Positions 1-48,989 of a stretch of 64,000 bases of DNA are shown one piece after another. Location: assembly GCA_965644295.1 (NCBI GenBank), contig CBFFRP010000238.1, forward strand, positions 1 through 64,000, written 5' to 3'. The notes beneath the pieces are model-generated. The model did no database searches and was not told where the DNA came from. It saw only the letters and a program-made list of their open reading frames with translations. The position numbers were made by a program, and so were the translations under genes. Source of the stretch: Paraphysomonas bandaiensis. Lineage: Eukaryota; Protista; Chrysophyceae. Numbering within the stretch: position 1 is the first letter of the stretch; every line of letters begins with the position of its first letter.

Positions 1-421
1 CAGTACAATCAATCCCCAATAAGCACTGAAGGAAATACGTAATGTATAACTGTATTACTGGATAATCTGGCAATACACATCTATCAGCGTGGATATCAAA
101 CCCGGAATTCTCCAGTAAACTTCTCCAGCCTTAAAGTCAATATATATATATAATAAGAACATATATATATATCATCCATCATCATTATCATCATTATGTC
201 TCATTATTGATAATCATGTCTTTCTTTGTCTTTTGAATGATTATGTAAATATCAATGATAAGCATGAATTGTCATAGTCATAATATATCATATATCTTAG
301 TGTGAGTTATGGCAATAATAATAATATTCAATCTATGTTTGCACAGATAGTATGTACAAACTTAAGCATATACAATAGAGAGCTTATGTAGAATAGAATA
401 ACCTGATAGCTGGTTATTACA
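1..421 (-). repeat. 3' LTR (partial) of the Gypsy-SET element
   Basis: Identical by eye to 9405-9828 except for one 3-nt indel. On the minus strand it begins TGTAATAACC immediately after the PPT. Confidence 0.93.
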
Positions 422-476: not shown

Positions 477-1901
477 CTAAAATGGCTTCATATTAGTAGC
501 ATTTATTCGAACCTCTTTTCCTTCAATTTCAGCATCATAAAGTATTGGACTTAGTCGCCGAATAACTTTATAAGGTCCTTCAAATCTAGCTTGTAATTTG
601 GCATTGATTTTATACAATTCCTCATCATCAGCCGATTTAAACACATTAATTGGACGTCGAATTCTGAAGAATAAATCACCAGCATTATATTCTTTGAACT
701 CTCGAGGTCGCCTAGATACCATATTATGTCGAAGATGATTCTTTTGAGCTTTCTTCGTTGCATAATTCCAAGCTTGTTCCAAAGCAATCAACAAATTATC
801 TATCCATTCAGCTTCAATAGTTCCAGGTTGTAATCGAAGCTCGGAAAGTTTTGAGGACAATGTAAACTCTATTGATGGCAAACGGCATTCTCTACCGAAC
901 ATCATATAATATGGAGTAAAACTTGTACTCGAAGACACTGTAGTATTATACATCAGTTGTACTGTAGGCAAAAATATATCCCAGTCATCCTGTAATACAC
1001 CTACAAAATGGTACAACTGATCCTTCAAAGTCTTGTTGTGATTCTCAACTAAACCCTGGCTCCTTGGAGTATAAGGAGTAGTGTTAATCCTTCTATACTT
1101 GAATAACTTGGATATTGCTTTGGTCAGTTTATTGACAAACTCTGTGCCTTTATCACTCACCAGTAATTCTGGTAACCCAAATGGACAAAACACATGAGTA
1201 ATCAAAGCATTAGCCACTTCCAAAGGCGTCTTGTTCTTAAGAGGCATAAGCCAAACAAATTTTGTAAGGAAATCCTTTACCACCAGAATATAACTGAAAC
1301 CACTTTTTGTTTTCACCAATCTTCCTGTCAAATCAATATGAATTCGTGACAAAGGAAATTTTGCATCAGGGTATTTCATTATTGGAATCTTTGGTCGCGT
1401 TTGATAGGTCTTACGTAATTTACAAGGTATACATTCCTCCACATGTTTCTGTACATCCTTGCGTATTGACGGCCAAAACTATCTCAATTTCAAAGTTTCA
1501 AGCATTCGTTGTGTTCCTGGGTGCGTATATCCTTCATGGAAATACTTCATTAGTTGGTAACGTAATACTTGAGGGACCATAATTTGCCAAGTTGTCAATC
1601 CCTTGTTTTTCTGAACATGTTTTCTCAACAGTATCTTATGCGATGATTCATCTGTTTTCTCATGTAACTTGTAAACATGACCATCCACTTCTAACTCATG
1701 GCCCATTTCAAAATTTGATAGCTGTGATATAATCAATCCCAGTTGAGTATCATTTTCTTGGATTTGAAACATGCTCTCCCTACTTGAAGGCCACTTAATC
1801 TCCGGATCTTCTTCCGGATGATCTAATAAATATTGATCTGATAACTCCCATAATCCAGATTCTCCACATACGGCGAATGGGTGAGTATCATATTTATCCA
1901 A
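477..1901 (-). pseudogene. Integrase (HHCC zinc domain plus DDE core), with an in-frame TAG at 1479-1481; no chromodomain
   Basis: FHEGYTHPG...LKLR*FWPSIRKDVQKHVEECIPC; IHIDLTG, LVSDKGTEF, SQGLVENHN, GPY motif. ORFs 1479..1901 and 477..1442 are in the same frame. Confidence 0.92.
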
Positions 1902-4900
1902 CTTCCCTGATAAAAAGGCCTCCTATGACCAACCACTAACTTATGCGTTTCATCATAATGTATTGAAGCAATCTCATATTTTTGGAAATTATCGTCATCA
2001 ATATACTTTCTGCCTACCAGATATTGCAATTCGTCAGCAAGTGATTGGCATTGTACTAGATTCTCATAAGAGTACTTCTCCAAAGCGTCGGTTTCTAGAT
2101 ATCGGAGAGTTCTCTCAAAATTCCTAGTATTTCGTTCCTCCATCTCAACAAGTTCCTGGATTCTGGAATTTTCTTCATCGCTGTACTTAAAGATTTTGGA
2201 ATATAGTTTCTCCTGAATTTTCCGTTTTTGATCGTACACAATTAACTCAAATTCATCTTTAAAAGACACGGTAGCCCTTCGTCTAGATCCATCTAAATTC
2301 AAAATTTGATTATCTTCTGGACTAAGTTGATCGCTTCTAGTACTCCAAAATTCTTTACCATAGTCGAAAAATATTTCATCCCCAGGCAAGATCTCTCTAA
2401 GAGCCATCAAAACTCCTTTAGATTTTTTCCACACCAATTTTGCATTAATCAATTGTTTGGATATCCCATCATTCGCATATCGACCTAAGCTTGAACCAGG
2501 TTCCCATCCATCAATAACAATCCTACGATGTGCTCCAGCAATCATCTGCATCCCATAATTGGAGCTTAATTGATCCACTCCTTCAGATACAACCGGACCC
2601 ACATAATCACAAATCTCAACATTTGGACAGATCTGTTTGGTGGCAAAAAGTCCCCATCCTGCTTTTAGCTTTGTCGATGGAAGAATAGTACATTGGTTGT
2701 AACCAGAAATTCGTCGTTCTCGAATTAACTTCATATCTTCTGACTCTTCTGTATTATCCATATAGTCCGTTCGAGATGGATGAAAGCTATTTCGGTTCGA
2801 GTGTGCAGTTGCATGTTGTATATTCTGTCCCGAATTGCTGAATTTCATCCTTGACTCACCAGTTTCCTGAACTTCCGTGATATTCAATTCTTTAAGTAGA
2901 TTCTCGACTTGACAACTATATTGTTCTACATCGATATAAGGCTGCTTCCTTCTTTTTAATGTAGAGCCAGCAACTTTAAATCTAACTGCAGAATTTTCTA
3001 ATTCTGAACTTTCCCCTAATACTCCCCCTTTCTTGACATCAGTCAAAGAAGACAACAAATCCAAATCCAGCGCATCACAATTACAGATTTGAGCCTCAAA
3101 TTTGTTTGAACAAGTATGAGTTTTCTTAATAGTTTGCGCCTCTACAACCGCTTGGCGTTTCAATTTACTCAACTGTCGTTTTGCAGCCCCCCATGATCGG
3201 ATGAGATCTGGATCCTCATTATCAACCACCGGGCCGAGATGATCGGAGAGCTCCTCCCTAGTAGCTGGCGGTATATCCCCTATTTGCCAAAGGCGACTTA
3301 ACATATCAGCAACTACATTTTCCACCCCTTTTTTGTAATGTAAAGCAAAACGATATGATTGGAGATCCATGAGGTATCCCAGCAATCGTGGATTAAGTGT
3401 TGCAGTCACTGAATGGACCATATATTTCAGGCAATTGTGGTCAGAATGTACTTCAAATTTACGACCACTGCTCAGATAAATATGCCAATGGAGAATAACA
3501 TCCCGGAGGGCCTTACATTCCAAATCCGTGGCCGAGTAATTTCGTTCAGCAGGAGTTAACTTACGACTGAAATATTCCACCGGATGGAGCTGACCTGCGT
3601 CATCATGCTGCATGAGAACCCCACCGATACCACGCTTTGTCTTGGAAGCATCCAGGTGAATGACAAACGGTTTAGAATTATCAATGTAACGAAGCACAGG
3701 AGCCTTCCGCAGCGCCTCTTTAAGCCTCTCCATGGCATGGCCGTGTATCTCTGGGCGCCAGAGTTTCTTCACGTTGACATTTTTCTTCGTCAAGTCATAC
3801 AGAGGCAACGCAACGTCTGCGTATTGAGGAATATACTGACGGTAGAATGAAGTACTTCCTAAAAAACATCGAACAGCCGTAACGTCCTCTGGGTCTGCAA
3901 GGTTTGTAATCGCCTCAACCTTCTTCGGATCAGTGCATCGGCCGTTGCTGGACAGAATATGTCCAAGGAACCGCAGCTCCCGATAATTAATATGAGTCTT
4001 TTCAATTTTAAATGTAAGATGACGATTTCGAAGTCGATCATATATGGACTGCTGTGTCAGAAAATGTGCACGAAAACCCCCAGTATGGTTAAGCACATCG
4101 TCCAGGTATGCAGAGACTTGAAATCGATCCATGTCTTCAAAAGTCTGGGCAATGACTCTACTGAAGTGTGAAAGTGCATTGACCCAGCCTTGTAACATCA
4201 CCGTATACTGTAAATGAGCGTTATGAGTGCGGAATGCCGTTTTAAATCGACTATCAGCATCAAGCTCCACACAGAAAAATGCATCAGCAATATCGCCCGC
4301 TGAAAACCGGTCAGTTCCCACAGGAATGCTATCTAGCAAGTCATCAATCCTGGGAAGTGGGAAAATATCTACCTTAGTTTTCTGATTGAGCGATCGGACA
4401 TCTGAACACATCCGAAAAAATGTGGCCACTTCAGGCCAGTTAATCTTTTTGAAGATTTCTAAATGTGCCGTGTCTCCCCATTTATCTAAAAATTTCTGAA
4501 TACGGTCATGATAAGGAACCAGAACTAAACCATGGCTCCAATCACTGTTTGAGGGTTGAAGCTTTTTCTGACGAAGCATCATACCAGTTTTAGCCTCTAA
4601 AAATGCTTGTTGCAATAAAGAATATTTCCGAGGTCGCGCCCGAACCGGAACTTCATCAGTAGTTTCAATACTCACTTTATAATCCTTAATCCGTGGAGGG
4701 TTATCGGGATCAGGAAAACAGAAAACATCAATATTGGCCAAAGCTTGAGCCAAAAAATAATCACGTTCATTATGATGTGAAGCAATAGTATCCGCGTCGA
4801 TAGAAATCTCCCCTTGCAACGAGACTGCTTCATCATCCTTATATATATCCAGCTTAGTTAAAATCAGTTCAATACACTCTTGAAGACGGTCAGGAGTGTA

Positions 4901-4990
4901 CTTGTCAAATCGTGGTTGAACTGAATTTCGTTGACACAAATCCACTAAATTCCATAATTCCACAGGGAATGACTCCGGTCGTGTGGACAA
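1823..4990 (-). CDS. Gypsy pol segment: reverse transcriptase, RNase H, linker, SET domain and an unknown domain
   Basis: FPLPRIDDLL, DIADAFF, KTAFRT, MLQG, AYLDDVL (RT); LDAS, GGVLMQ, YFSRKL, ERNYSATDLE, SDH, NVVADMLSR (RNase H); GWGLFA...GRYAND...EIFFDYGKEFW (SET). Confidence 0.93.
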   Translation of the reverse strand: MSTRPESFPVELWNLVDLCQRNSVQPRFDKYTPDRLQECIELILTKLDIYKDDEAVSLQGEISIDADTIASHHNERDYFLAQALANIDVFCFPDPDNPPRIKDYKVSIETTDEVPVRARPRKYSLLQQAFLEAKTGMMLRQKKLQPSNSDWSHGLVLVPYHDRIQKFLDKWGDTAHLEIFKKINWPEVATFFRMCSDVRSLNQKTKVDIFPLPRIDDLLDSIPVGTDRFSAGDIADAFFCVELDADSRFKTAFRTHNAHLQYTVMLQGWVNALSHFSRVIAQTFEDMDRFQVSAYLDDVLNHTGGFRAHFLTQQSIYDRLRNRHLTFKIEKTHINYRELRFLGHILSSNGRCTDPKKVEAITNLADPEDVTAVRCFLGSTSFYRQYIPQYADVALPLYDLTKKNVNVKKLWRPEIHGHAMERLKEALRKAPVLRYIDNSKPFVIHLDASKTKRGIGGVLMQHDDAGQLHPVEYFSRKLTPAERNYSATDLECKALRDVILHWHIYLSSGRKFEVHSDHNCLKYMVHSVTATLNPRLLGYLMDLQSYRFALHYKKGVENVVADMLSRLWQIGDIPPATREELSDHLGPVVDNEDPDLIRSWGAAKRQLSKLKRQAVVEAQTIKKTHTCSNKFEAQICNCDALDLDLLSSLTDVKKGGVLGESSELENSAVRFKVAGSTLKRRKQPYIDVEQYSCQVENLLKELNITEVQETGESRMKFSNSGQNIQHATAHSNRNSFHPSRTDYMDNTEESEDMKLIRERRISGYNQCTILPSTKLKAGWGLFATKQICPNVEICDYVGPVVSEGVDQLSSNYGMQMIAGAHRRIVIDGWEPGSSLGRYANDGISKQLINAKLVWKKSKGVLMALREILPGDEIFFDYGKEFWSTRSDQLSPEDNQILNLDGSRRRATVSFKDEFELIVYDQKRKIQEKLYSKIFKYSDEENSRIQELVEMEERNTRNFERTLRYLETDALEKYSYENLVQCQSLADELQYLVGRKYIDDDNFQKYEIASIHYDETHKLVVGHRRPFYQGSWINMILTHSPYVENLDYGSYQINIY
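2342..2700 (-). other. SET domain embedded in the retrotransposon pol
   Basis: Motif I GWGLFATKQI, then EICDYVG, YGM, IDG, motif III LGRYAND, NAKL, and motif IV ALREILPGDEIFFDYGKEFW. Order and spacing are canonical over ~120 aa. Confidence 0.88.
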
Positions 4991-7900
4991 TCCGAAGTCG
5001 TATCGGCTATGTTAACAGGCGGTGGCTCCGGAGGTGGCCGATTCACCTCTTTGCCGTCTACTCATTTCGATGAGGACGCCAGCCTAGTGACATTTTCGTG
5101 ATTCTCTTCAGATAACATAGAAATATCTGAATGCTGGAATTTGTCATCAGTAGGCATGATAGTGGTATCCTCCGTCTTGGCACTGCCATTCATAGCAGAT
5201 TCCACCGTCTCCTGATTATGAACCTGCATCCCCAGTAGTATGGGTTGAAGTCGTACAACTAAACGCGGTCTACCCGGTAGATGAATCCACTCATCGGTAT
5301 GATTAGAAGCCCATATATAAGGTCTGCTCGCCGTACAAATAGCATCTTCAAATTGTAAGACGGGCTCATTAGCATCATCACCGGAATTAATCCTTGCAAC
5401 CTCTGGTAGAGTCTGTTTCCATCCACCTAACGGAGCACCCTTGCCCACTTGAACAGGAATCCGCATTTTAGAATGCGGTGGGATATGTTTCGATATACAG
5501 ACTGCAGCCTTGTGCGGTTGAGGTTTATTTTCACGGAGATGGCGTGCAACACATTTCTGTACACCACAGGGTCCTGAGCTGATGCCATTTGCGTAACAGT
5601 CTCATTCCAGTTGAATTGAGGCATTGCATACTGAATACCATTAGTTTGGAACAACAGCAGGTTATGATCAAACAAGTCAATCATTTTGATACGTCGTAAT
5701 GCATGCCCTCCAAAGATTACATTCATGGAACAATTAGGGATAATTGGTATCCATGCTTTCAACTGAACTTGTTCCTTTGCAGTGTTCAAAAGTGGTGCCT
5801 CTCCCGGCAGCACTGCCACAGGTAAGACCCGTTGTGCCGTAACAGTGTTGGTAAGACAAGCTCTCCAACTCACAGCGATATCCTGTGAACCTATTCCCCG
5901 AATAATGTACCGGTCTCTCTTTGGGATTCGTACTCGCTTAAGATTCAAGAGGGCTGCACACTCTTCGTCGATCAAGGACTCCATAGAGCCATGATCCACT
6001 TGGTGCCAACCGACTCTCTGTACTGGTTTACCAGTTTCATCAACTGTATCATATATAACACGAAACATGGATAATGTATCTTGAGATTCATCCCTAGGTG
6101 TCACAGTGTGCACTAAGTATCGAACTTTTTGTGCAGCATGAACCTTTCGTTTGGGTTTTGATTTTGACTTAGTAGATCGTGAACCGGAAAGTGAGTCTGT
6201 ACTGTGAGCAGGTATAGAGTCATCCAATGTAGAGAAAGAAGAGTCATCATCACTATCCGCCCAATGTACTTGTGGTGTACTAGAAACACTTGATGCTATG
6301 TAATTAGATTTCTTCCGTTCGCCACCAATGAACGTCGTATGCAAAGCACTCCCTCCATCCCACCGGCTAGTTAAATCCTGAAATGCTGCCTGAAATTCCT
6401 CCTTCTGAGCCGTAGGCAACTGAGACCAAGGTTGGCTATACTTATTCAATCTGGACAACCAAAAATTGTATATTCGATTCTTTTCAACGTTACGTGGTGT
6501 CTCAGACACAAATCCAAGTGGGTCAAATTTCCCATTCGTGAGGCGTCGGCATTGAGCGTTGTTAATGCTATGTCGAAGGCCACATCGTGAACATGTAAGC
6601 TTCGCAATCTCAATCGGTGTGAGAGATGGTTTGGATTCCTCGCGGATGCCGGCGTGAACTTTTTGATGTCGTCGTGAGCCACCCTCACCCTTATTTGTGT
6701 CTGGTTGTTTACTAGATTGGACATCAGGACGTATAATGTATAGTAGCGTTCCCTGTTGGAATTCTTCCTGAATCTCTCGCCATATTGATTCTACCTCCTC
6801 CCATGATAGACTCCAATTTTCAGTCGACTTCGCCCTTTCAATTTTTGTGATCTTATTGTCGTACGCCGCAACCAACGATTTACCCCAAACAGGCTCTTTT
6901 CCTACCACTCGGCGCATAGATTCTTCCATCACCTGTGCCGTCTGGCGATCCGGCGTATTATGCTCAACTACCTCTTTTAGTTCATAATATAGTTGCATAA
7001 CTGCTGTAGGCGTAGCGAGATCAGGAGCAGCCCAGTCCTCAATCTGTTTGGCACGCTGTTCATTGGTCTGTACGGGACAATAATTACGGATAGCCCAATG
7101 GCAGAAATGCACCCAACGACGCATCCAAAATTCATATTCAGTGGCTAATTGGCTATCCTCCTGGTCATCCCATATCTCTGGCACACGATTCAAAGACAAC
7201 CGTTGCAGTTCCTCTTTAAAACCGCCCTTAAAACACCAACCATTCTTTGTCTGTATGACCAAATCTTTCAGCCCCATCTTGGCCTGACGTGCCTTCTGGA
7301 CAGCGAAACGGAGTCCTCTTTCAATGGGGTATCAATTAGATTGGTCCTTATCTAGACGTATCTTGTCATCATTCTTCATGTAGAGAGTAGGCTCCTTGAC
7401 TTCTCTTCTCCATGGAGTAGCTTTGGGCAATGCTTTAGACATTAATCTCATGGCTCTAGACGATCGCATTTGGTTACAGAGCAGTGACCAGTGTTGCTCT
7501 CCAATTTGTTGAAGGTGACACCCGAATGCTTGTGCGTCTAGCATTCTGCCATCTTCAGTTGGATAAATACGGGAATTCGATCTTGAACATCTAGAACTCA
7601 ACACTCGGGATGTACTTGATCTGGTATCCGCTGACCGACTTCCTCTGCTGACAAAGGAACCCCGACTACCAGTGCTTACGAAGGAGTGGTATGACTCATC
7701 GTCTGAGTCAACGGTCCTCTCATCCCAAGCTCCAAATTTCTGATTTTTCCGACTGAGTTGTTTGCTGAGGAGATTGCAGCGCATCATTAATTGGCTATCG
7801 GCCTCCTCCCACATAGTTTCAGCCATGTCTCTTATATCCAGGTATTGGTTCAGCACCATGCACAATTCCGCTGTTTCGTAAATGTGCTCTTCAGCCACTA

Positions 7901-8210
7901 ACTCATGTACATTGTCAAGAACTGTCAGCCTACTTAACCACTCGCGAACATTTGATGGTAATTGCAAGCCGTTTCCTCGATTTAAGACTAGTTGGGCAAG
8001 CTGAGAAATATCTTCCGCAGAACTCTCTCTTGCTATTTTCATTTGCTCAAAAAAATGGTCCTGTAAACGATCAGTGACCTCAGTAGCTGTACAAGCCATG
8101 TAAATCTGCTGCTCCCAATGCTGCAGTGGCTCTGCTATATGTGTATCGCTGTTTTGACCATCTGGTGGTATGTACCCTCCGTCGATCTGCGTACTGCTGC
8201 AGGATGTCAA
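4991..8210 (-). pseudogene. Gag, zinc knuckle and aspartic protease region of the Gypsy-SET element (in-frame TGA at 7332 and 5062, frameshifts near 5466 and 4985)
   Basis: CSRCGLRHSINNAQC knuckle; protease-like VDHGSMESLI...IRGIG...NVIFG. ORFs 7332..8210 and 5427..7277 are in the same frame across a TGA. Confidence 0.75.
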
Positions 8211-9129
8211 GAGAAATCTTTAAGTCCATAGGGTCTCTAGCCCCACGATCCAGGTACAAATGATCCATATATGTGTCCTCATTTAAGTCTGGCCGAGGAC
8301 GCAATCTTCTATGGCCTAATATTATGCACTTATCTAAAGTGTCTATGGTGGGTCTCTTTGATCTGAGTATCCCCCTCCTTACTCGGCATCGATAACATAG
8401 ACCACCCTGAATTTCCATTGAATTTACCTGGTCCTCACAATCAATACATTGATTTTCCGAGCAATAATAACATATTCCTCCTGCGGTGAGACGCTTGGGA
8501 TCTGTGAGTCGCTGACAGATTTGACACCTATCCGCTTCTCTACCTAGTTGGTCTGGTCTGCTGGTGTTATATACACCTTGCAATCCAGAGGTGGAATGTA
8601 GCACATTGTGTGCTTCATCCCCTGCGTGAGGTAAGGGTGTATAATGACACTCCTTATCCTCATCCTCCCTGTTACTTTGTCCCTTGAATGGCAAGGGGTC
8701 CATATGTAATGGACTTTCTCCTGTCGCATCTGCATCAAACGAACAAAAATCATCTTGGGCCCTCAATGGTTGAATAGCGTCCTTACCGAATGCGAGAGGT
8801 TTTCGGGCTGACAAGGGTACCTCCTCCGGACTACTAAGACGATCCACCAGTTCTGGAACAGTCGTTGCTTGACTGTCTGCTTCATGAGTTTCTGTCTCTC
8901 TAAAGTCGTCACTTTGTTTATTGAGAGATGAAATTTCCTTAAAAAATTGAGACACCAACGTCTCTGATTCAGTCTCACTTAATCCAAAAGCCAAGCCTAT
9001 GTCTCGGATTTGATCCTCACTAGCATTGGCAATGGAAGGGTCTAACCCTCCAAGCATAAGCCTGAGAGTCCTTCTCACTGACTCAAATTTAGTAGACTCT
9101 TGTGCACTATCAAGAGTCTCCTCCTCCAT
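8080..9129 (-). CDS. N-terminal ORF of the Gypsy-SET element with two C4 zinc-ribbon-like repeats
   Basis: ATG lies just inside the 5' LTR. CQIC-x14-CYYC and CIDC-x13-CYRC. Overlaps the next ORF in another frame. Confidence 0.6.
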   Translation of the reverse strand: MEEETLDSAQESTKFESVRRTLRLMLGGLDPSIANASEDQIRDIGLAFGLSETESETLVSQFFKEISSLNKQSDDFRETETHEADSQATTVPELVDRLSSPEEVPLSARKPLAFGKDAIQPLRAQDDFCSFDADATGESPLHMDPLPFKGQSNREDEDKECHYTPLPHAGDEAHNVLHSTSGLQGVYNTSRPDQLGREADRCQICQRLTDPKRLTAGGICYYCSENQCIDCEDQVNSMEIQGGLCYRCRVRRGILRSKRPTIDTLDKCIILGHRRLRPRPDLNEDTYMDHLYLDRGARDPMDLKISLDILQQYADRRRVHTTRWSKQRYTYSRATAALGAADLHGLYSY

Positions 9130-9404
9130 AATAATAACAATATAATCAAATCACAATGAACAAATATGTGTCTACAACTACAATGCTATCTACCAGCAAT
9201 TTCAAGAGTAAGGAAATTGCATCTTATTATCAATAATATAAATATGTCTACCTACGATTCCGTGATCAATGGAATGAACATCATTCATATTCAATACCAA
9301 ACACATCAGTCTAACACAGTTGATCATAATAACTCATTACAACTGTATAAGGGAAGATACATTCAGTATTCTCATTGTAGTTGAAGCCTGGTATTCGTAC
9401 TCCT

Positions 9405-9828
9405 CAGTACAATCAATCCCCAATAAGCACTGAAGGAAATACGTAATGTATAACTGTATTACTGGATAATCTGGCAATACACATCTATCAGCGTGGATAT
9501 CAAACCCGGAATTCTCCAGTAAACTTCTCCAGCCTTAAAGTCAATATATATATATAATAAGAACATATATATATATCATCCATCATCATTATCATCATTA
9601 TGTCTCATTATTGATAATCATGTCTTTCTTTGTCTTTTGAATGATTATAATGTAAATATCAATGATAAGCATGAATTGTCATAGTCATAATATATCATAT
9701 ATCTTAGTGTGAGTTATGGCAATAATAATAATATTCAATCTATGTTTGCACAGATAGTATGTACAAACTTAAGCATATACAATAGAGAGCTTATGTAGAA
9801 TAGAATAACCTGATAGCTGGTTATTACA
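9405..9828 (-). repeat. 5' LTR of the Gypsy-SET element (inner boundary undefined; may extend to ~9376 or further)
   Basis: Match to 1-421; terminal TTATTACA at 9828. Confidence 0.93.
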
Positions 9829-13637: not shown

Positions 13638-14756
13638 TCAGTCATCATCGCCGTAACACCCACTCAATATTTCCAGTGCATCACATCTTACTCGCGGCTG
13701 GATTTTCTTCTCTATTACATCACTACTCAAGCCTTCAATTGATTGATCAAATTTAGCTCTAGAGAATTGAGGGAGTAAAGCCGCCACCTCTGTATTGCGT
13801 GTCGTCGGCTGAATCTTCAGCTTCCGCACATCAATACAGCGCGCTGCTTGCTTTTGAACAGCAACTACTTCGCGCTGTTTTTGTCGAGCACTTGAGGACA
13901 CCATCGCTGGTGATTTGTTCGACTTCCTTGTATCTTTCGAAGTCAGCCCTTTACCACTCGATGGGAGGCGTCTCGACTTCGCAGATGGTATGTCAAATAT
14001 ACTACCACTCTGAATACTTGCATATGTGGATCGTTCCTTGGCTGCAAATGAATCCCTACATGTGTTCCGGCGAAAGGCTGCCTGCGAAGCACCCTCCCGG
14101 TCTGCCGCACTCGCCTCGACTAGGGGAATACACAAACCTTTTTGTGTCCCCTCCACTTCAAGCTCTCGCCTACGCTTACGAGATGCTCTGTTTTTTTTCC
14201 GAAGCATGAAATTTACATCATAGTCTTTACGAACCGTCATTTGCGACAGATTCATGAGAGCCGACAAATGACTTTTCGACGCCAATGCCTTTTCTTTGTC
14301 CTCTTTCTCATGCTGAAGTTGATATATGGGGTCCGACTGCAGGCGATCTCGCTCTTCATCCGTTACCGCATTGATTATAGAATCACCGAAATCTGGAGTA
14401 AACTCTTGCTCCATTTTGCGTATACCTTCAGCATAGTCATATGTTTTATTCTGTGGATCGGTCTTGATGACAATTTTATTGTCACAGGAGGCACACTTCA
14501 TTGTAAACGCAAATATAGTGGTTGAGAAATACGCCCCCGCCTTGTCTTTCTTTGCATTAAATCGAGTCCCTTTGCCAATGTGACGGTCGCACTTAAGGCA
14601 CCACCCATCAAACGGTACTTCAAACCGAATAATTCCATACTGCTGATACTGATTCGCTCCTTTCGACCCGGCGAACTTCGATATTCCTCCATACTCAGGA
14701 CGCCACTCCGGGGGAAAGTAGAAGTTATCTGCCCTACTTGCAGCCAACGACGACAT
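13638..14756 (-). CDS. CCDC130: CWC16/YJU2-family splicing factor (CCDC130/YJU2B)
   Basis: MSSLAASRADNFYFPPEW...IIRFEVPFDGWCLKC...KGTRFNAKK...YFSTTIFAFTMKCASC...IKTDPQNKTY. Start placed at the ATG at 14756; intronless. Confidence 0.9.
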   Translation of the reverse strand: MSSLAASRADNFYFPPEWRPEYGGISKFAGSKGANQYQQYGIIRFEVPFDGWCLKCDRHIGKGTRFNAKKDKAGAYFSTTIFAFTMKCASCDNKIVIKTDPQNKTYDYAEGIRKMEQEFTPDFGDSIINAVTDEERDRLQSDPIYQLQHEKEDKEKALASKSHLSALMNLSQMTVRKDYDVNFMLRKKNRASRKRRRELEVEGTQKGLCIPLVEASAADREGASQAAFRRNTCRDSFAAKERSTYASIQSGSIFDIPSAKSRRLPSSGKGLTSKDTRKSNKSPAMVSSSARQKQREVVAVQKQAARCIDVRKLKIQPTTRNTEVAALLPQFSRAKFDQSIEGLSSDVIEKKIQPRVRCDALEILSGCYGDDD

Positions 14757-15073
14757 CGAGGTGAATAGTGCTACAAATAATAAACGAGAGGGAAATCGAA
14801 AGCTATAGTTAATGTAGGTGAACTTATATTGACATGCTGTTATTTTCTGCTTATGTAGGTCATTTTCTGCTGCATAGAGCATACCATACCCTGGGCATAC
14901 ACGTCATAAATCTGAATTCATAAGTAACCCACCGCAAACGTATATTCCCTATACAACTATAGAAACTCCTGCTTTTTGGGAAATAAGTGGATATTTATAC
15001 TGTACATCACAGCGGTCCTGAAGATCATGTTGCTATTTCAGGGTTTCGGGAAAAAACAGTCTTGATATATTCT

Positions 15074-27570: not shown

Positions 27571-29496
27571 CTACGAATTCGCCCTTTGTTTCATCGACTT
27601 GTTTTCCTTTGCTCTCTCTGCAGCGTTCAAATTCCTTTTGCGCAGTCTAACATTCTTGGGGGTCACTTCCAGCACCTCATCAGGGTCCATATAGGCGATC
27701 ATCTCCTCTACAGTCATCTTCCTTGCAGGAGTGAGACGAATAGCCTCATCAGTGCCAGAAGCTCTAATGTTAGTCAACTTTTTCATCTTACACGGATTGA
27801 CTTCCATCTCTCCCGATCTAGAGTTTTCCCCAACCACCATGCCTTCGTACACCTCCTCGCCAGGAGATACAAAGAGCTTCCCACGCTCCTCGGTAGCAGC
27901 TAGTGCGTATGCAGTAGTTTTTCCGTTGGCCATACAAACTAACTTACCTTTCCGCATTCCCAAGAAGTCAGTTTTGGGAACCTGGTCATAGTGGGAGAAC
28001 GATGAGTTGATGGTCACATTTCCCCTAGTAGCGTTGGTGAGCTCATGCCTGAAACCCATTAGCCCTCTACTTGGCACTGTGTAGATCATTCTTGATCTAT
28101 CCCCGATGTCTTTGAACTCCAACATCGTGCCGTTTCGGTTGCTCATACTTTCGATCACGATACCCTGTAAGTCTGGTGCAATGTCTACTACCACTTCCTC
28201 AAACGGCTCTTTCTCCACACCTTCCTCTACAATACTCAGCACACTCGGTGGAGATACTGTCAGCTCGAATCCCTCCCTACGCATAGTCTCTATGAGAATT
28301 CCGATTTGTAGCTCACCCCTGCCCTGTACGTCAACACTCTCCACATCACTGGAGGGGCGCAAGGAGAGGGTCACGTTATTTTCGACTTCCTGTTGCAGTC
28401 GCTGCTTGATGAGTGCACCTGTCAATTTGTTACCATCCTTGCCGGTTAGAGGAGACGTGTTGGGTCCAAATGTCATAGATATAACGGGAGGGGTGATCGG
28501 CACGGTCTCCACGGGAGTGTTGCGCTCTGGACTACATACCGTGTCGGCCACACCGCCATTACAACCCGTCAATGAGACGATCTGTCCTGCATACGCTCGA
28601 TCCACTTCCACGCGCTCTAGACCCCGCATATAAAAGAGCTTTGTAACCTTGCTCTCAGCTGCTATCTCATCACCGTTCCGAGAAAGAACATGGATTGAAT
28701 CACCCACTCCAACTGAGCCAGATTCAACACGGCCAGTGACTACACGACCCAGAAAACTATCCCCAGATATGGTATTCACACTAAGAGCAAATGGCTCACT
28801 TAGGGTGGCATCATTTGAAGGAGGAGGAAAAGTTTCGATTATTTTGTCCAGTAAGGCCACCACGTCTTTACCCGGAGCATCGGCAAGGTTTTCTACAGTC
28901 CAACCTTGTCTCGACGAGGCAAACAATAGTGGATAATCCAGCTGATCTTCATTCTCAGTCAAGTTACAAAATAGATCAAATATCTCATTTTGCACTTCTT
29001 CGGCTCTGTGACCTTCGCGATCTACTTTATTCAGTACAACGATTGCTTTCTTCCCACAATGTAGGGCCTTAGTCAGAACAAACTTGGTTTGAGACATGGG
29101 CCCTTCAGTCGCATCAACCAATAGGATGACGCCATCAACCATGCTCAATATTCTCTCAACCTCACCAGAAAAATCAGCGTGCCCAGGTGTATCAACAATA
29201 TGAAGCATGTGGTCTTTGTAGTGCAAACGAGTGTACTTGGAAGTGATAGTAATTCCTCGTTCCTTCTCGTGAACATTGGAGTCCATCGCTCTCTCACTGT
29301 CACCTGCAGAACCGCATGCCGCTAGTAGTTTATCCATAAGAGTTGTTTTGCCATGATCAACGTGTGCAATAATCGCACAATTTCGGACGAGTTGGGGATT
29401 ATATTTCACAGTGCAAAATGATCTCGTCAACTTCGTTGGTCGGATTCGCGGTATAACCCCGAATTGCCTCCCCAGATATCTAGTGAAAGAGTGCAT
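27571..29496 (-). CDS. typA: Translational GTPase TypA/BipA, organelle-targeted (likely mitochondrial)
   Basis: RNCAIIAHVDHGKTTL, ERGITI, DTPGHADFSGEVER, NKVD, QGRGELQ, PSRGLMG, EVYEGMVVGE, KKLTNIRASG, EVTPKNVRLRK. Arg-rich N-terminal extension lacking acidic residues. Confidence 0.95.
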   Translation of the reverse strand: MHSFTRYLGRQFGVIPRIRPTKLTRSFCTVKYNPQLVRNCAIIAHVDHGKTTLMDKLLAACGSAGDSERAMDSNVHEKERGITITSKYTRLHYKDHMLHIVDTPGHADFSGEVERILSMVDGVILLVDATEGPMSQTKFVLTKALHCGKKAIVVLNKVDREGHRAEEVQNEIFDLFCNLTENEDQLDYPLLFASSRQGWTVENLADAPGKDVVALLDKIIETFPPPSNDATLSEPFALSVNTISGDSFLGRVVTGRVESGSVGVGDSIHVLSRNGDEIAAESKVTKLFYMRGLERVEVDRAYAGQIVSLTGCNGGVADTVCSPERNTPVETVPITPPVISMTFGPNTSPLTGKDGNKLTGALIKQRLQQEVENNVTLSLRPSSDVESVDVQGRGELQIGILIETMRREGFELTVSPPSVLSIVEEGVEKEPFEEVVVDIAPDLQGIVIESMSNRNGTMLEFKDIGDRSRMIYTVPSRGLMGFRHELTNATRGNVTINSSFSHYDQVPKTDFLGMRKGKLVCMANGKTTAYALAATEERGKLFVSPGEEVYEGMVVGENSRSGEMEVNPCKMKKLTNIRASGTDEAIRLTPARKMTVEEMIAYMDPDEVLEVTPKNVRLRKRNLNAAERAKENKSMKQRANS

Positions 29497-30784: not shown

Positions 30785-32513
30785 TATTAGGGTTCAGCTT
30801 AATACAAGATTGTATCTGTGAGATATATTGAGAATTGCTCATTTTAAGCTAGATCACAGAGAGAATTTGTCGTAAGACTAGATAGATTTATTAATATCGT
30901 TAACACGAAGTTGTGATAACCAACACTAACTCATTATAATCCCTGCATAATATCCTACATATGCGAACCTCTCGTTACTGAACATATCTTGAAAGATCAA
31001 ACTATTTCAGTTTCTCAATATCATCACAGCATTTGTACATCACTATATTTCACTGTATTTTCGTACATTGTCTTCAAGTGACATACTGAATATACTAGAA
31101 TAAGATCCATATTCTAATACTCCCACTCAATGTAGAATGCAGTGAGATAAAACAACAGTGATCACAATAATCTGATAATGCTATGACTATCTAGTCCCAT
31201 AGGTAAAAACAGATGTGAAATCTTTTAAAGATACATATATACCTAGCAGTCAACTAGATATACAGTTATGTGGGATTTTCACCCATTAAAACACACCTTT
31301 AACCTCTTCGGGGTCGTTTCTTCTGCTGCTCCTCCACTCTGTTAGACACACTCCTCTTAACCCCGGTAATCGTTTTCTCATGACGGCTGAAGATCTTCGT
31401 GGACAACGCCTTTGTAAAATTATCGGCCGCCATATCATCCGTAGATACATGAATCAACTTTGCTGTAGGAAATTTTCCATTAACATGTTCTCTTATCCAG
31501 TGATACTTGATGTCAATATGCTTCGACCTCTTATGATACACTGGATTCTCTGAAAGATCCTTTGCACTCTTACTATCCATAAAGAATGGAGTCGGCTTCG
31601 CTATCAAGAGTCCGAGCTCCTTGAACACCCCCCGAAGCCACACCAGTTCTTGCATAGCCGCATACTCCGCCATATACTCAGATTCCATGCTCGAAGTCGC
31701 AACTGTGGTCTGAATCTTGGACTGCCAGGCCAAAGCGCCCGCACATAAAAACACGATGTATCCCGTTGTGGACCGCCGAGTCATCCTATCCCCAGCCCAG
31801 TCTGAATCACTGAATACATGTAAATCAAACTCACTCCCACTGAATCTGATTCCCTTATCAACTGTACTACGTAAATATTTCAACAAATGAATAGCTAATC
31901 TGCAAGTCGCATATGTTGGAGAAGTACTAAATCGAGCCAATAACCCCACAGCGTAAGCCAGATCAGCAGGTCTAGTGTGAATCGCCAAATGCAACACCGC
32001 TCCAATAATTCCTCTATACGGAAATGATTCGACCCACTGCTTCTGCTCCTCCGTCAGCTCACGTTGCTCTGCCAACAAACCCTGAACATTGGTAGGTAGT
32101 GGAGTCTCCTTATTCTTACTGCTTTTTCCCATAAACGAACTGAATTTCTTGACAATATTCTTGGCATATTCTGATTGATCTAACATGTACCAGTCCTCGC
32201 CTCTCGTGATTCTGATATTCAGAAACCGTTTGCACACACCCAGATCATGCATTTCAAACGTTTCGCAGAACCTACGTTTAACACTTTCTAAGTAGGTGAG
32301 ATCAGCAGATGCAATGATAATAATATCATCAACATATAATATCAGCAATAAGTGTAATTGACCATTACTCCATCGCATATACAAGCATGCATCTAAAATG
32401 CAGGCAGTAAAATGTAACGATTTGATAAACTTGTCAATATGTTTGTTCCACTGCCTCGGTGATGCCCGCAGTCCATATATCACAGACGGATAAACAGTAA
32501 CTCCTGGCAACAA
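30785..32513 (-). mobile_element. 5'-truncated Ty1/Copia element (RT, RNase H and probable 3' LTR at 30785-31119)
   Basis: IYGLRASPRQW, LYVDDII, HDLG, SDSDWAGD, RRSTTGY, SSMESEY, RSKHIDIKYH. PPT GAGTGGGAG lies next to a segment bounded by TATTAG...CTAATA. Confidence 0.88.
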
Positions 32514-38300: not shown

Positions 38301-40243
38301 CCAGGTGAAACTGCATGAAAATACTTCGGAGAAACTGTCCGTACAGACACCGTGGGGGCAGTATCAGCCATTGTTTCTACCTGAAGGAGTGTCTCCAAGG
38401 ATCAGTGTTTTGCAGGAAGCCGTTGTTAAGTTGTTCGGTGATCTTGAGTGGGTGTTATGCATTTTTGATAACGTACTTTTCTGCTAGCTCACGACTACGA
38501 AGACGCTTATAAGAAACTCGAGATATTCTTGGATCGGTGTGCTGAGCATGAGGTTGTGTTGAAATTCGCGAAGATCTGGTTGGGATTCCAAGAAGTCAAG
38601 TTTTTCGGCTACATAGTGCGACACAATAGTTTTGAGTTATCTGAAAACAGAAAGGAGGCTATTTTGAATATTCCGTTTACAGAGAATGGGAACAAATGCA
38701 AGAAAGTCCGTACCTTATTGGGTATGGGAGTGTTCTTTGCTCCTTTCGTGCCTAGTTATTCCGATTTGGTTAAACATCTAACGGATATGACGAAGAGTAC
38801 TTTTAACTGGGACGAGTCTACGTGGGGTTCGATTACAGACTGGAGTTCGAAGAGTACAAACGGGGTTTGCAGCGGTCCTGTTCTTTGTTATACCCGGACT
38901 ACAACCTGGAGTGGACGCTACAACGTACTGACGCTAGTGATTATGGAGTGGCTGGTATTCTTTTCCAGACGGTACCGGCAACAGAAACAGTTACAGCTCA
39001 GCAGCAAACTATAGCATTGTGTTCAAAGAAACTCTCAGTACAGGCTCAAAGATGGTGTACTATTGAGAAGTACCGGGAAAGAACAATGTCGTGGCAGATT
39101 GTTTATCGCGATTGCTATATCTATCGGGAATGACGGACGAGGATGACGATGAGGGCTCAGAGGAAGTAAATTTTGTGACACTGCATAACAACTTTGAAAA
39201 AAGACGATTTTGAGGACGAAGTGCAGGAGATCGCGCCACCTACGGAGGAGCAGAGGATAGATTATCATCAGGCTATCAAGGAGGTTCAAAACGCACAAGT
39301 AGGACATTGGGGTGCGAAAGAGAGGTGGAAGCGTCTGTGTAAGCAATTTCCGGGACACGGTGTACCATTCAAGGTGGTTGCAGATTTCGTGGACGAATGC
39401 ATCAACTGTCAGAAGAACCGGAGGGAGCTGAAGCAGCGATTGATTCCTATCACAAGACATTTAAAACCACCTCTTTACAGGAGTGCATTGGGAATTGACG
39501 CGGTTGCTATTACACCAGTTTCGAAATCGGGGTACACACACATTGTGGTTATGGTTAATTTGTTTACAAAATTGGTGTACTTATATGCGGTGAAAGGAAT
39601 GACGGCTATCAATTTGGCTACAGCAGTATGGAAGTGCTGGTGTACATACGGTCTCACGGATATGATTTTATCAGATATGGGTCCGGATCTCAAATCAGAG
39701 CTTTTCGCGGAGCTGGTCAAGTTGTCAGGACTCCGTCATCATGTTTTTAGTATCGCCAACAGGCATGTCAATGGATGTGAGCGTATTATTAAGGAAGTGG
39801 TTCGTCACATCCGTGCTATTTGTTTTGACAAGCGAATTGAGGCTGATGCTGTTTTGGAGGACGAACTGTTACTTGCCACTATCATGTTCATTCTGAATAC
39901 CCACGAGAGTAGTGAGACGGGGTATTCTGCATTCGAACTGACGTTTGGGTCCCAGGATTCTATCTATAAGAATCTTTTGGCTGCCCAGGGAAGAGACAAT
40001 GATCCGTCTCATCAGCTGTTGAAAAGACTGAACGATTACTTAGCTCTTGTTCGTCAGATATCAGCAGACTACCAGAAGTCTCTAGTCGAGAAACGAGCGG
40101 AAGCGGGTTTGGATCCTGCCAAACAGAACCAGTATTGTCCAGGCGATTTTGTTATGTTCGATGCTGGTGCTAAACCACATCCGAAATTATCCTCGAGGAT
40201 GAAGGGCAAATCAATTAAATTTATTGTATTACTCTACTACTAA
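35325..40243 (+). mobile_element. Degenerate Ty3/Gypsy element (probable short 5' LTR at 35325-35512; gag-CCCH-PR-RT-RH-IN; 3' end truncated)
   Basis: LFDTGAL protease; RICGDY, DIDLTNAFHQ, LPEGV, CIFDN (RT); TDASDYG (RNase H); LGIDAV, ILSDMG, NGCER (IN); many frameshifts. Confidence 0.9.
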
Positions 40244-42012: not shown

Positions 42013-43953
42013 TTATTCAATTGTGTACTCATCCGATGACATCATCTTGGTGATTCCGTATTGTATTGGTGATGCACCATCAATGGTTGTCACAGAAGCG
42101 ACATCGATCTCACAGAAAAGCTGAGGAGAGGAAAAATTAACATTTATGGGGAAAAATGCACCGGCGTTATTTTGTTTCACCGTAAACTCAAAGGTTCCGG
42201 ATGAGTTGCTTGCATCAACGAGAGGAAGTTGCCACACGACCTCGTGGTTGGAGGTGCTGTGCTTATAGCTTCCATCGATGGTCACGACATTAATTGGGTC
42301 CGCGGTGCCAAGAGGGATGTGGATGTCTACGTCATGCAGAGTAAGACTAGGTACATCCATGGAGTATTCAATAGAGACGATCATATGGCCACGGGACTCC
42401 TCCTCTGGCCAGCAGTTGATTTTGAGTGGGATCATATCAGAATCGCTGTTGGTAGAGTAAGCCCACTTGAGAATACCAACAGGTCGCGCAGAAGGAAATC
42501 CTTTGTTCGTATCTTTCAGTTGCAGTAATCCGGACTTATCATACGCCCCCTTATTGATCTTCGGGTGTGTATTGAACGTGAACTGATCAACATTCGATCC
42601 GGATCTCATCTGGACACTGCAGAGTCCAGCCTCATCAGTGGATGCGGTCAAGCTAAGAGACCCTTTAATCTCGAAAGCCTCCACAACTCCATCCCTTGTG
42701 ATACGTGCGTGAATCTTTTCTACTACAGCCAACATTACGGGTTGCTGAACTACAGAATGCTGTGGCTCTGATGAGGCGTGTGCAACTGTTGCCCGCGATG
42801 GCACGACCGGAGCGAGTTTATCCTCGTTCATGAGTGCATCCTCCAGTGACTTGTTCTTGGTACTCTTCGAGGAAAGAGACATACCCTTCACTGCAGCGGG
42901 TTTACGACTCTCATATGCCGGAATTGCTGTCACTCTTTCTGGCTCTAAGTAGAAATACAGAGTAAGTACTATAACACAAGAGCACAACGACATGTATATC
43001 GTATAAATGAAGCTTCCTCAGCACAGGAGCACTGAGAACAAACGACACGTACCGCGATATGAAGGCGTCTGCAAGCGAGACATATCGGAGTTCATCGGCT
43101 CTCCTCCACCAATGCCCTGCATGGAAATGCCTTGCTTAGCCATGTCCCGCTGCCGTTCCCTAATGACTTTCGCCGCATCCTTTGCTTGATCTCGTGCAGA
43201 CTCCATCTTGCTCATTTGAATCATCTTATGTAGTTTCTCCTCGTGACTCTCCATTTCCAGGTTGGTACGAATTTGCTGAAGATTAATAGGCTCACGATAC
43301 CCACCCGCTGTGATCACCTACACCACTGTCAAGGTGGTCGCACTGCTTTACAGAAACGTACCTCGTCAAAAGCAAATATAAGTTCGAAGCATTTGTCAGT
43401 AACTTTCTCCTCTGTTAGATTGTTGGCAGTTCCCGCAACATCAGGGACAACTATTACGAGTACATTTCACTCCACATGGTATATGATTGACTTATTACCC
43501 ACCTTTGGACAGCAAGCGCAATGTATCCAAGTCTTGAATTATATTACTCGCTTTATTTGTAATGAGCAAAAGATAAAGATTTTCCATTGGTTGATAAACG
43601 TATCTTGAAAGATTTCATTACTATCAATGATCATACAATCAATAAGTCTCTATATACCTGACGCTCTCTGTTTCAACAAAAGTATGTTGTTTAGAATCAG
43701 ATCCTAATAGTTTTGGAAATGCTGCCAATAAACCCTAATAGAAAGACGGTTACAATGAATTTAATTCATATATATTCTCACCTCAATTCTAATTCTTGTC
43801 ATTTCAACAAATTGACGGGACATTAATGCTGTATTATATTGTTATATGAGTTGTATGTATGTATGTATGTGTATGTATTGTAGAGGTGTGACTTGTGTTA
43901 GTTAACATACCTTTGCCTGTCTTTGTACATATTGCTGCACTGAGAACAACCAT
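42013..43953 (-). CDS. ARCN1: Coatomer subunit delta (multi-exon)
   Basis: First exon [14 protein letters not shown]; [15 protein letters not shown]; C-terminal mu-homology domain FNTHPKINK...PVGILKW...PLKINCWP...SSGTFEF...FFPINVNF. Confidence 0.93.
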
Positions 43954-47400: not shown

Positions 47401-48989
47401 TGGGGCCCGTTGAGACCTCTTGTGGGTGCGCAAGATAGCGCTTATGAGAATGTGCTTCGCGAACGTATGACACTTCTATGGGGCCCTCCAGGTGTGCAAA
47501 TAGAACAATATCAGTTTTGAATAATATTGTGTACTCATGGAGCATTTTATCAATAATAGGTACAGGGAAAACTCACTTTGCGGCGAAGACAATGCTCAAT
47601 TTATTTGAATCAGTTTCACGAAACAATGGAAATAACAATTTGCCACTGAGAATATTAGTGACAGCGTTTACACACACAGCTATCGACGAAATTTTGAAGA
47701 AATTTACTGTCCTATTCCGCCTTGCAAATGACCCTAATCGCGGAGATAGTGGCGGCTGGGCAAGGTTGTGCTATGTGGCTAAACTTCAAAGCTTGGGGCG
47801 GGGAGGAGAAGCCGTACGTATTGAAGGTGTCGATTATACGGAGAGTGTAATCACTAAGATAAGAAGGGCGTCATTTTCTGTGATAGGCGGTACGACTTGG
47901 GCCCTCTATAAAAAGTACACAAATCATTTGAAGGAATTATTTGACCTCGTGATCATCGATGAAGCTTCTCAGATGCCGGTCATGGACAGTGTGATGGCGC
48001 TCTCATGTCTGCGCACCTCTCCTCCAGGAAGGCTGCTGGTTGTGGGAGACACGTTGCAGTTACCGCCGATATTTGCCTATAAGTTTCCCTTCCCTCCGAA
48101 CAACTTACCCCCACTCAATGCTTCTGTACTGGAATGTTTGATGAGAAACGACCAAAATCGTCGAGTAAACCTAAGCAATGTTGTGAGCGGTCAGGTGCCC
48201 CCTCCGCCTTTGATGATTAAACTCAACAATAATTTCCGCATGAATGGTCGCCTCAGTCAGTTCACGAGCCAGCTATATGGCCCAGGATATATGCCTTCCG
48301 ACCTATCTCGTAATGCCAATGGGAAATGGGTCGTCTCTAAAGACATGGTTTGTTCGATACGTGATACGCTTGGCAGTGGAGTGTTAGATGGCAATGCCTT
48401 GAAAGAACTCATTAGCATTCGCCTCGTACCCCACAGGTTCCAGAAGTCATCCTCGTCTTCTGAGAAGTCGTTGCTAAGTGAAGAAGAACTGCTGCTATTG
48501 TCAGATCATGATCAGCTGCAAGAAGAGGCCAATATTGTGGCGAAGCTTTTTGTACAACTTGCCCAAAGCCATAGTAGAATGAGTGAAGATGAAGCATCTA
48601 AAAATATATTTTGCTGTACACCTCATCGCAGACAACGGAGTGCTATTGTCACTACCTTAAGTGGTCTTGGGAAGGGACACTGGAGTAGCGTGGCCGACAC
48701 TGTTGAGCGCGTGCAGGGCCAAGAGCGGGATATTGTGATTATTTGCATGGGGTGTTTCTTTGAGCAGCATAATGTGTCTCGGGAAGCGGCGTTTCTATAT
48801 TCCAAAGAGCGTTTGAATGTTGCAATTAGCAGAGCCAAAAAGACTTGCATTTTGGTGTACACTGACGCCGTAACCGCACAAAATCTGGATGTCATCGGCT
48901 CACCTGACACAAATACAGCATATTGCCACTTACTCTCATTTATCAGAGAGTCATATAAAGTAGATTTTCCTGTCATGTTTTCCGTCTAA
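44470..48989 (+). CDS. PD-(D/E)xK (Cas4/RecB-like) nuclease plus SF1B (DNA2/UPF1-like) helicase fusion; introns ~44968-45024, 46938-47003, 47492-47559
   Basis: IIPDFI...VIDCES...NQVQV; Fe-S-like Cys pattern (LDC...CAQCPYEEEC); Walker A WGPPG|TGKT split by an intron; TAFTHTAID, IIDEASQ, VGDTLQLPP, NFRM, TPHRRQ, TVERVQGQERD, RLNVAISRAK. Confidence 0.85.

Follow-up and report, generated by a model that had tools for sequence, protein, structure and literature searches.

A clade of Ty3/gypsy retrotransposons with a selected SET domain between RNase H and integrase, traced from a defective copy in Paraphysomonas bandaiensis

We analyzed a stretch of 64,000 nucleotides (nt) from the chrysophyte Paraphysomonas bandaiensis (GenBank assembly GCA_965644295.1, contig CBFFRP010000238.1, positions 1 to 64,000 of the forward strand; hereafter the window) and found that it holds a defective copy of a young Ty3/gypsy long terminal repeat (LTR) retrotransposon, coded on the minus strand. 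The Pol polyprotein of this element carries a SET domain upstream of its integrase, and the SET domain is an integral, selected part of Pol in a recently transposing family. We place very high confidence in this description, which takes in the defective state of the window copy, the layout of intact Pol (reverse transcriptase, RNase H, a variable linker, SET, a conserved segment that we call module X, and integrase), and the inheritance and selection of the SET domain. When a function is included, so that the selected SET domain in Pol is also a chromatin-marking enzyme, the explanation as a whole is the best available and is held with slightly better than even confidence. Below, family A denotes the window element together with eight intact copies, and family B denotes a second SET-bearing family in the same genome.

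The window copy encodes its SET domain within a 1055-amino-acid (aa) open reading frame (ORF) at 1823..4990, which also contains the reverse transcriptase (RT) domain (aa 192-346, 3953..4417; Pfam RVT_1, E 4.8e-17), the RNase H domain (aa 416-546, 3353..3745; Pfam RT_RNaseH and RT_RNaseH_2, E ~1e-28) and the first third of module X. A first-pass annotation of the window, made by a model from the letters alone, had placed the SET motifs in one open frame with RT and RNase H, and all of them do lie within this ORF. The Pfam SET profile PF00856 matches aa 778-878 (2345..2659) with an E value of 1.3e-7 and a score of 32.4 bits, above its cut-off of 22.4 bits, and it scores 31-51 bits in the other copies and in family B. 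The PR/PRDM-type profile PF21549 scores 26-31.5 bits in family B, around its cut-off of 27 bits, and has no match in family A, the window copy included.

The recognizable SET motifs are GWGLFATKQI at 2630-2659, ICDYVG at 2597-2614, GRYAND at 2468-2485, and ALREILPGDEIFFDYGKEFW at 2345-2404, the last of which includes motif IV with its conserved Tyr (FFDYG, 2357-2371). A profile built from this segment and 17 relatives matches solved SET domains with E values down to 3.5e-13, among them those of EZH2 (fungal and human), G9a/GLP, PRDM12, MLL and SETD8. The four motifs align in register with the solved domains, and motifs I, II and IV match those of EZH2. Across the 18 sequences, which are ~35% identical, the invariant residues are G-x-G-L-F-A of motif I, Y-x-G of motif II, G-R of motif III, a downstream Asn, and G-[DE]-E...Y of motif IV; these are the residues of the S-adenosylmethionine (SAM)-binding and catalytic motifs. 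An AlphaFold model of the domain has a mean predicted local distance difference test score (pLDDT) of 60.6, with values of 70-90 in the core strands, and the best 50 matches of this model in a Foldseek search against the PDB are all SET or PR domains (probability 1.00, template modeling [TM] score ~0.5). No pre-SET or post-SET Cys clusters are present around the transposon SET domain, as the first-pass annotation had remarked.

A six-frame search of the 62.6-Mb assembly recovered eight further copies, each with an uninterrupted frame of 1521-1526 aa that runs from RT through RNase H and SET to integrase. In the SET region, these copies match the window copy at 95-96% identity, and their identity among themselves exceeds 99%. 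On contig C432, the copy has a 1356-aa ORF1 covering gag and a protease-like region; after a single in-frame TGA comes a 1521-aa Pol frame, which contains RT, RNase H, SET (aa 796-896), the integrase domains Integrase_H2C2 and rve, and a weak match to a Tf2-type SH3. That TGA lies at L025:5260-5262, and because gag-protease and Pol are in the same frame on either side of a single stop codon, the arrangement implies stop-codon read-through rather than frameshifting. Three full copies that we examined have 876-nt LTRs in identical pairs with TG..CA ends, and the same three are flanked by 4-bp target duplications (TTTT, AATA and CAAA), with a purine-rich tract ahead of the 3' LTR. The identical LTR pairs and the target duplications indicate that elements with this Pol transposed very recently.

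Alignment to an intact copy reveals how the window copy is broken. A 2-nt insertion at 1915-1916 (Pol codon 1043) interrupts module X (1608..2092) and puts the integrase out of frame with RT, RNase H and SET. The frame-shifted piece that follows, at 1479..1901, takes in the C-terminal half of module X together with the first part of the integrase H2C2 zinc-binding domain, as judged from the ORF list, a partial Pfam Integrase_H2C2 match and the alignment to an intact copy. In this zinc-binding region, the window copy has a TAG where intact copies encode Tyr (Pol aa 1188), and this in-frame stop cuts the integrase core off from what lies upstream. The integrase core and C-terminal piece lies at 477..1442, with an rve match at ~1065-1355 (Pfam E 1.6e-9) and a weak Tf2-type SH3 match. 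At the other end of Pol, a 2-nt insertion at 4984-4985 (Pol codon 21) shifts the RT-RNase H-SET frame relative to gag-protease. The gag-protease region has lesions of its own relative to the intact copies: near 8142 it lacks 5 nt, at 5563-5564 it has gained 2 nt, and codon 601 of ORF1 is a TGA. The same 2-nt insertion is found in both window LTRs (386-387 and 9793-9794). The first-pass annotation was right about the SET domain and about its position between RNase H and integrase, and it missed the breakage of this copy, module X, and the fact that the window integrase is not in the RT-RNase H-SET frame.

Insertions of 2 nt make up five of the eight small insertions or deletions that separate the window copy from the intact copies (386-387, 1915-1916, 4984-4985, 5563-5564 and 9793-9794), and several of them are tandem duplications of the adjacent dinucleotide. 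Possible sources are template-switch errors by RT, a host mutational bias or an assembly artefact. The window copy probably descends from a template that was already damaged, and some residual chance is left to assembly error as the source of its lesions.

The SET domain is under purifying selection in both families, with ratios of non-synonymous to synonymous change (pN/pS or dN/dS) of 0.03-0.12, and the neutral evolution that would be expected of a passive passenger is not what we observe. Between the window copy and an intact copy, Pol is 97.4% identical at the nucleotide level and differs at 76 synonymous and 37 non-synonymous sites (pN/pS 0.13). For the SET domain in this comparison, the counts are 5.5 synonymous and 2.5 non-synonymous (pN/pS 0.12; binomial p ~0.002), while the RT, RNase H and integrase domains give 0.00-0.07 and the linkers give ~0.2 (0.20 for the linker between RNase H and SET). 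In family B, the SET domain has a dN/dS of 0.08 (14 synonymous, 4 non-synonymous; p 1e-6), and a second comparison within that family gives 0.03 (9 synonymous, 1 non-synonymous; p 2e-5). Module X has a dN/dS of 0.05 in family B. Since pN/pS stays low downstream of the frameshift in the window copy, the substitutions arose in functional lineages and the disabling lesions came later.

Relative to an ordinary gypsy Pol, the insert between RNase H and integrase is ~545 aa long and consists of a variable linker, the SET domain, a short variable linker and module X. The first linker (2660..3352 in the window) is poorly conserved in the alignment, and neither linker region has a Pfam match even at E<=1. 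Module X is a conserved segment of ~160 aa (Pol aa 985-1145) that likewise has no Pfam match and no sequence match in the PDB (best E 0.19). Its AlphaFold model is confident (pLDDT 91) and consists of a helix, a small SH3-like barrel, three helices and a beta-hairpin that continues into the zinc-binding domain. A Foldseek search of the PDB with this model returned nothing at E<=0.001, and a shape search of the ESM Atlas returned TM scores of at most 0.37. With VIA-align, the closest folds, all of them under the noise level of the tool, are CAP-Gly (Z 5.5) and then a group at 4.0-4.7 that includes a VapXD toxin-antitoxin chain, Tudor (4.4) and the MRG15 chromo barrel (4.0). As modeled, the N-terminal half of module X is an SH3-like barrel of no finer class.

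The two nearest SET-less relatives (40-43% RT identity) that we checked, P0243 and P0241, have gaps of 410 and 640 aa between RNase H and integrase. Both contain a weakly detected stretch that resembles module X (P0243:1105-1213, E 5.7e-10; P0241:1326-1436, E 2e-4) and no recognizable SET domain, suggesting that module X may predate the capture of SET. Accessory domains may be inserted repeatedly at this position between RNase H and integrase.

The SET-bearing layout extends well beyond family A. Family B is 46% identical to family A across RT and RNase H and 35-38% identical in the SET domain, and its members (contigs C476, C661, C654, C339, C463, C75 and C656) have the order RT-RNase H-SET-integrase wherever the sequence reaches, with frames of up to 2219 aa and stronger SET matches (E 1e-11 to 1e-13). 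In the other abundant gypsy families of this genome (25% RT identity), ~75 aa separate RNase H from the zinc domain of integrase, and SET is absent. Degenerate relics of the same RT clade (39-59% identity, with many stops) are present at C297:800555-801427, C234:193154-193597 and C297:2811-3575; the clade has therefore long been resident in this genome.

When the family A SET region was used in a word-indexed homologue search, one cluster alone was returned; the relatives in public protein collections described here come from an exhaustive HMMER search and from another search that started from a metagenomic relative. At a level of at least 48% RT-RNase H identity, 63 of 68 clusters carry SET, and the remaining five stop 0-280 aa past RNase H, short of the SET position. 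At 34-44% identity, SET was found in none of 52 clusters. One change accounts for the presence of SET on an RT-RNase H tree of 122 rows. In a SET tree, all 85 transposon SET domains group together with 19 short, possibly fragmentary proteins; the basal support is weak (21), these neighbors carry neither names nor taxa, and the tree does not place a donor. From these sequence comparisons, SET belongs to the ancestral make-up of a distinct gypsy clade, present in this protist and in many marine metagenomes, and has been inherited vertically within it, a conclusion that shares in the very high confidence given above to layout and selection as a whole.

All of these relatives in the public collections come from JGI, ENA or Logan assemblies. 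The clade was not found among named NCBI or UniRef proteins in the collections searched, and it is probably missing from the annotation of current transposon libraries. One relative lies on a 537-kb eukaryotic contig and adjoins a flagellar gene (FAP206). Sequencing runs of 14 studies contain the element, and most of them are marine metagenomes. One marine metagenome of 2015 yielded an 8.6-kb contig that covers window positions 1400-5100, from RT to integrase in one piece, and that lacks both of the 2-nt insertions found there in the window copy.

Most metagenomic members of the SET-bearing clade (P0014, P0016, P0164, P0170 and ~40 further clusters; also L063:3500-10774 and L062:7588-9645) are polyproteins of 2250-2650 aa. 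These polyproteins add an Exo_endo_phos domain (an APE-type endonuclease, PF03372) between the protease-like region and RT, and such members combine an endonuclease of the type found in long interspersed nuclear elements (LINEs) with a retroviral-type integrase; families A and B have no Exo_endo_phos domain. In one further protein from an ENA metagenome (P0074), a related SET domain lies upstream of a LINE-type RVT_1 domain. SET may have been captured by retroelements more than once.

Given that its SAM-binding and catalytic motifs are conserved, the transposon SET domain is probably an active methyltransferase rather than a pseudo-enzyme that only binds. In the mechanism that we propose, SET would be a SAM-dependent lysine methyltransferase synthesized within Pol, packaged alongside RT and integrase, and carried into the nucleus with the pre-integration complex. 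There, probably still joined to or associated with integrase via module X, it would methylate the tail of a nucleosomal histone at the integration site or close to it, and the outcome would be either that the chromatin state of the new copy is set or that a mark guiding integration is created or extended. SET would in this way be the writer counterpart of the chromovirus chromodomain, a reader that this integrase lacks. A nuclear chromatin substrate would be the most economical one because SET lies upstream of integrase, there is no chromodomain, and the adjacent module contains a barrel. That an active enzyme acts on chromatin is a proposal to which we give even chances. Self-silencing, anti-silencing and the marking of targets are all compatible with the observations, which do not tell them apart.

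A more elaborate version of this mechanism strikes us as unlikely, and it is worth stating for what it would entail. Here, SET would write a histone lysine methyl mark, and module X would bind that mark or a related one, making a self-contained write-and-read device on the N-terminus of integrase. If this were true, the element would nucleate or follow its own chromatin state and so steer further integrations, and no mobile element would have been shown to encode a histone writer before it; the trait would be spread clade-wide in abundant marine protists.

Several observations weigh against reading the domain as a chromatin-marking enzyme of single origin. Motif III is G-R-[FY]-[AC]-[NQ]-D in all members, so that the usual Asn-His is replaced and the His is always Asp; the first-pass annotation had seen that the motif departs from NHS in the window copy. 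The motif III His is important for activity in some SET enzymes, and a non-catalytic binding role for SET is therefore possible. The modest pLDDT of the SET model is too low for viewing the SAM pocket and the pseudoknot, which the first-pass annotation had proposed to inspect in a folded model; that check yielded the SET and PR fold matches alone. We also infer, rather than observe, the histone target and the association of SET with integrase. Furthermore, the branch that represents the single origin is poorly supported: its value in the Shimodaira-Hasegawa-like approximate likelihood ratio test (SH-aLRT) is 18 for the RT tree and 21 for the SET tree. Among the listed runs that contain the element, none is on record as RNA.

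The alternative that survives best, which we consider rather improbable, is a pseudo-enzyme that does not transfer methyl groups and instead binds a histone tail or another protein, tethering the pre-integration complex to chromatin either alone or together with module X, in the manner of many PR/PRDM domains. The Asp in place of the motif III His in every member favors this model, as does the match of family B and of some relatives to the PRDM2 PR-domain model, and an integrase without a chromodomain might be expected to have some other targeting device. However, the best-conserved residues are the SAM contacts and the motif IV Tyr, which a pure binding module would not need, and an invariant Asp fits a conserved variant active site just as well as it fits a dead one.

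Somewhat less probable again is an active SET enzyme with a substrate other than chromatin, such as Gag, RT or integrase of the element itself or a host restriction factor, modified in the particle or in the cytoplasm. SET enzymes of this kind are common (SET7/9, SMYD and Rubisco LSMT are examples), the transposon domain is a minimal SET without pre-SET or post-SET Cys clusters or reader domains, and its fold matches include SET7/9 and SETD8. Nevertheless, the adjacency to integrase and an SH3-like barrel with a weak likeness to Tudor and chromo barrels fit a nuclear chromatin role at least as well. Finally, a passive host-gene fragment or an assembly chimera limited to the window copy is extremely improbable, in line with the first-pass annotation, to which SET looked integral to Pol: no point in its favor is left beyond the defective state of the window copy itself, the same layout recurs in eight more copies, in family B and in 63 metagenomic clusters, purifying selection acts on the domain, and the junctions are bridged by contigs from independent studies, with the 8.6-kb contig excluding a chimeric assembly across the SET region.

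The LTRs and the order of Pol domains mark the window element as a Ty3/gypsy LTR retrotransposon. The 5' LTR (8948..9828, 881 nt, TG...CA) was delimited as a direct repeat and by LTR BLAST, and the 3' LTR (1..421) is partial, comprising the first 421 of ~880 nt, with the rest lost at the contig start. The latter is 99-100% identical to 9405-9828, in keeping with the near-identical LTR pair of the first-pass annotation, and was likewise compared with the intact copies by LTR BLAST. A purine-rich run, GGAGGGGG, lies immediately upstream of the 3' LTR, and no tRNA-type primer-binding site was identified. The order of Pol domains, RVT_1, RT_RNaseH, (SET), Integrase_H2C2 and rve, is that of Ty3/gypsy elements, both across the window pieces and within the intact 1521-aa frame. 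The window integrase ends ...INATNMKPF, and the chromodomain profile PF00385 has no match in the window pieces or in the intact Pol proteins of families A and B; both points bear out the first-pass annotation.

The gag-protease region (5062..9129) is split into four ORFs in the window, as seen from the ORF list and from alignment to the intact 1356-aa ORF1. Its protease-like stretch (~5536-6086), with the motif D-H-G-S, was assigned by motif inspection alone, and a zinc-knuckle-like motif in the region was also noticed only by eye. ORF1 (gag) has no Pfam match, even at E<=1, and its aa 1017-1199 match related polyproteins in their N-terminal region. The gag frame has its first ATG at 9129, ~180 nt within the 5' LTR (window 8948-9129), and the intact copies are alike in this respect, with an ORF1 start at L025 1192 and an LTR end at 1373.

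Beside the element, the window encodes a Yju2/Saf4 splicing factor (13638-14882), a BipA/TypA GTPase (27571-29496), an adaptor-complex medium subunit (42013-42993), a UPF1-like helicase (47478-48989) and an ATP-dependent DNA ligase (58924-61368). With such ordinary host genes adjoining it, the insertion is not in a gene desert. The window also has fragments of other retroelements (31299-32513 and 39194-40243), namely part of a Copia-type RVT_2 and, separately, part of an rve integrase.

Transposons are usually seen as targets of histone methylation, and the known exceptions carry readers (chromodomains, PHD or MBD) or DNA methyltransferases. In the present case, selection maintains a domain of the histone-methyltransferase type throughout a clade of recently active LTR retrotransposons, suggesting that mobile elements can write marks on proteins or chromatin. 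Possible uses would be the choice or preparation of integration sites, the limitation of the element's own expression, or interference with host silencing. The question is directly testable, given intact natural copies, a small domain and a host that is apparently a widespread marine flagellate.

Among known systems, the chromoviruses (such as MAGGY and Tf1) belong to the same Ty3/gypsy superfamily and likewise have a domain of the chromatin system in Pol next to integrase. The chromovirus chromodomain, which is thought to couple integration to histone methylation (10.1101/2021.11.30.470311), is a reader at the C-terminus of integrase, whereas the element described here has a writer-type SET before integrase, an additional module X and no chromodomain. 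SymbioLINE-Dnmt and SymbioDIRS-Dnmt3 of the dinoflagellate Symbiodinium and an element of the charophyte Klebsormidium carry cytosine DNA methyltransferases (de Mendoza et al. 2018, PMC5890265). As in our case, a captured epigenetic writer is kept in many copies in protist or algal genomes; in those elements, however, DNA is methylated (PF00145), and the domain here has a lysine methyltransferase fold (PF00856) and lies in a Ty3/gypsy Pol. Arthropod Copia elements carry MBD (PMC6673714). In a survey of predicted genes from 172 eukaryotes, SET is among the chromatin domains fused to transposable element domains (Grau-Bove et al. 2022, 10.1101/2021.11.30.470311). In the parts of that catalogue available to us, SET fusions are counted in bulk, without a description of the RT-RNase H-SET-integrase layout; the only SET-RVT_1 row among the supplementary rows seen is a LINE-like Symbiodinium gene (SET RVT_1 DnaJ), and those rows include no RT_RNaseH-SET or SET-Integrase_H2C2 combination. 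We found no description of such an element in the full-text literature searched, where absence is no proof.

SETMAR (Metnase) resembles the retrotransposon Pol in joining SET and a transposon-derived domain of the nuclease/integrase type in one polypeptide. SETMAR is a host gene that acquired a mariner transposase; in the present case, a mobile element acquired SET, and it is still transposing. The minimal viral and bacterial SET proteins, such as chlorovirus vSET, share with the transposon domain a bare core of ~120-150 aa without pre-SET or post-SET Cys clusters and a similar ending, ...G-[DE]-E-I-x-x-x-Y-G-x-x-[YF]-W. Likewise, the nearest Atlas clusters by sequence features are stand-alone SET proteins of 150-190 aa from Nucleocytoviricota, Haptophyta and Chlamydiota. 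The minimal SET proteins differ in being free-standing and in having N-H in motif III, whereas the transposon domain is embedded in a polyprotein and has N/Q-D. Thus, retrotransposons with a captured domain of the chromatin system are a kind already known, and what appears to be new in this clade is that the captured domain belongs to a histone-writer type of enzyme.

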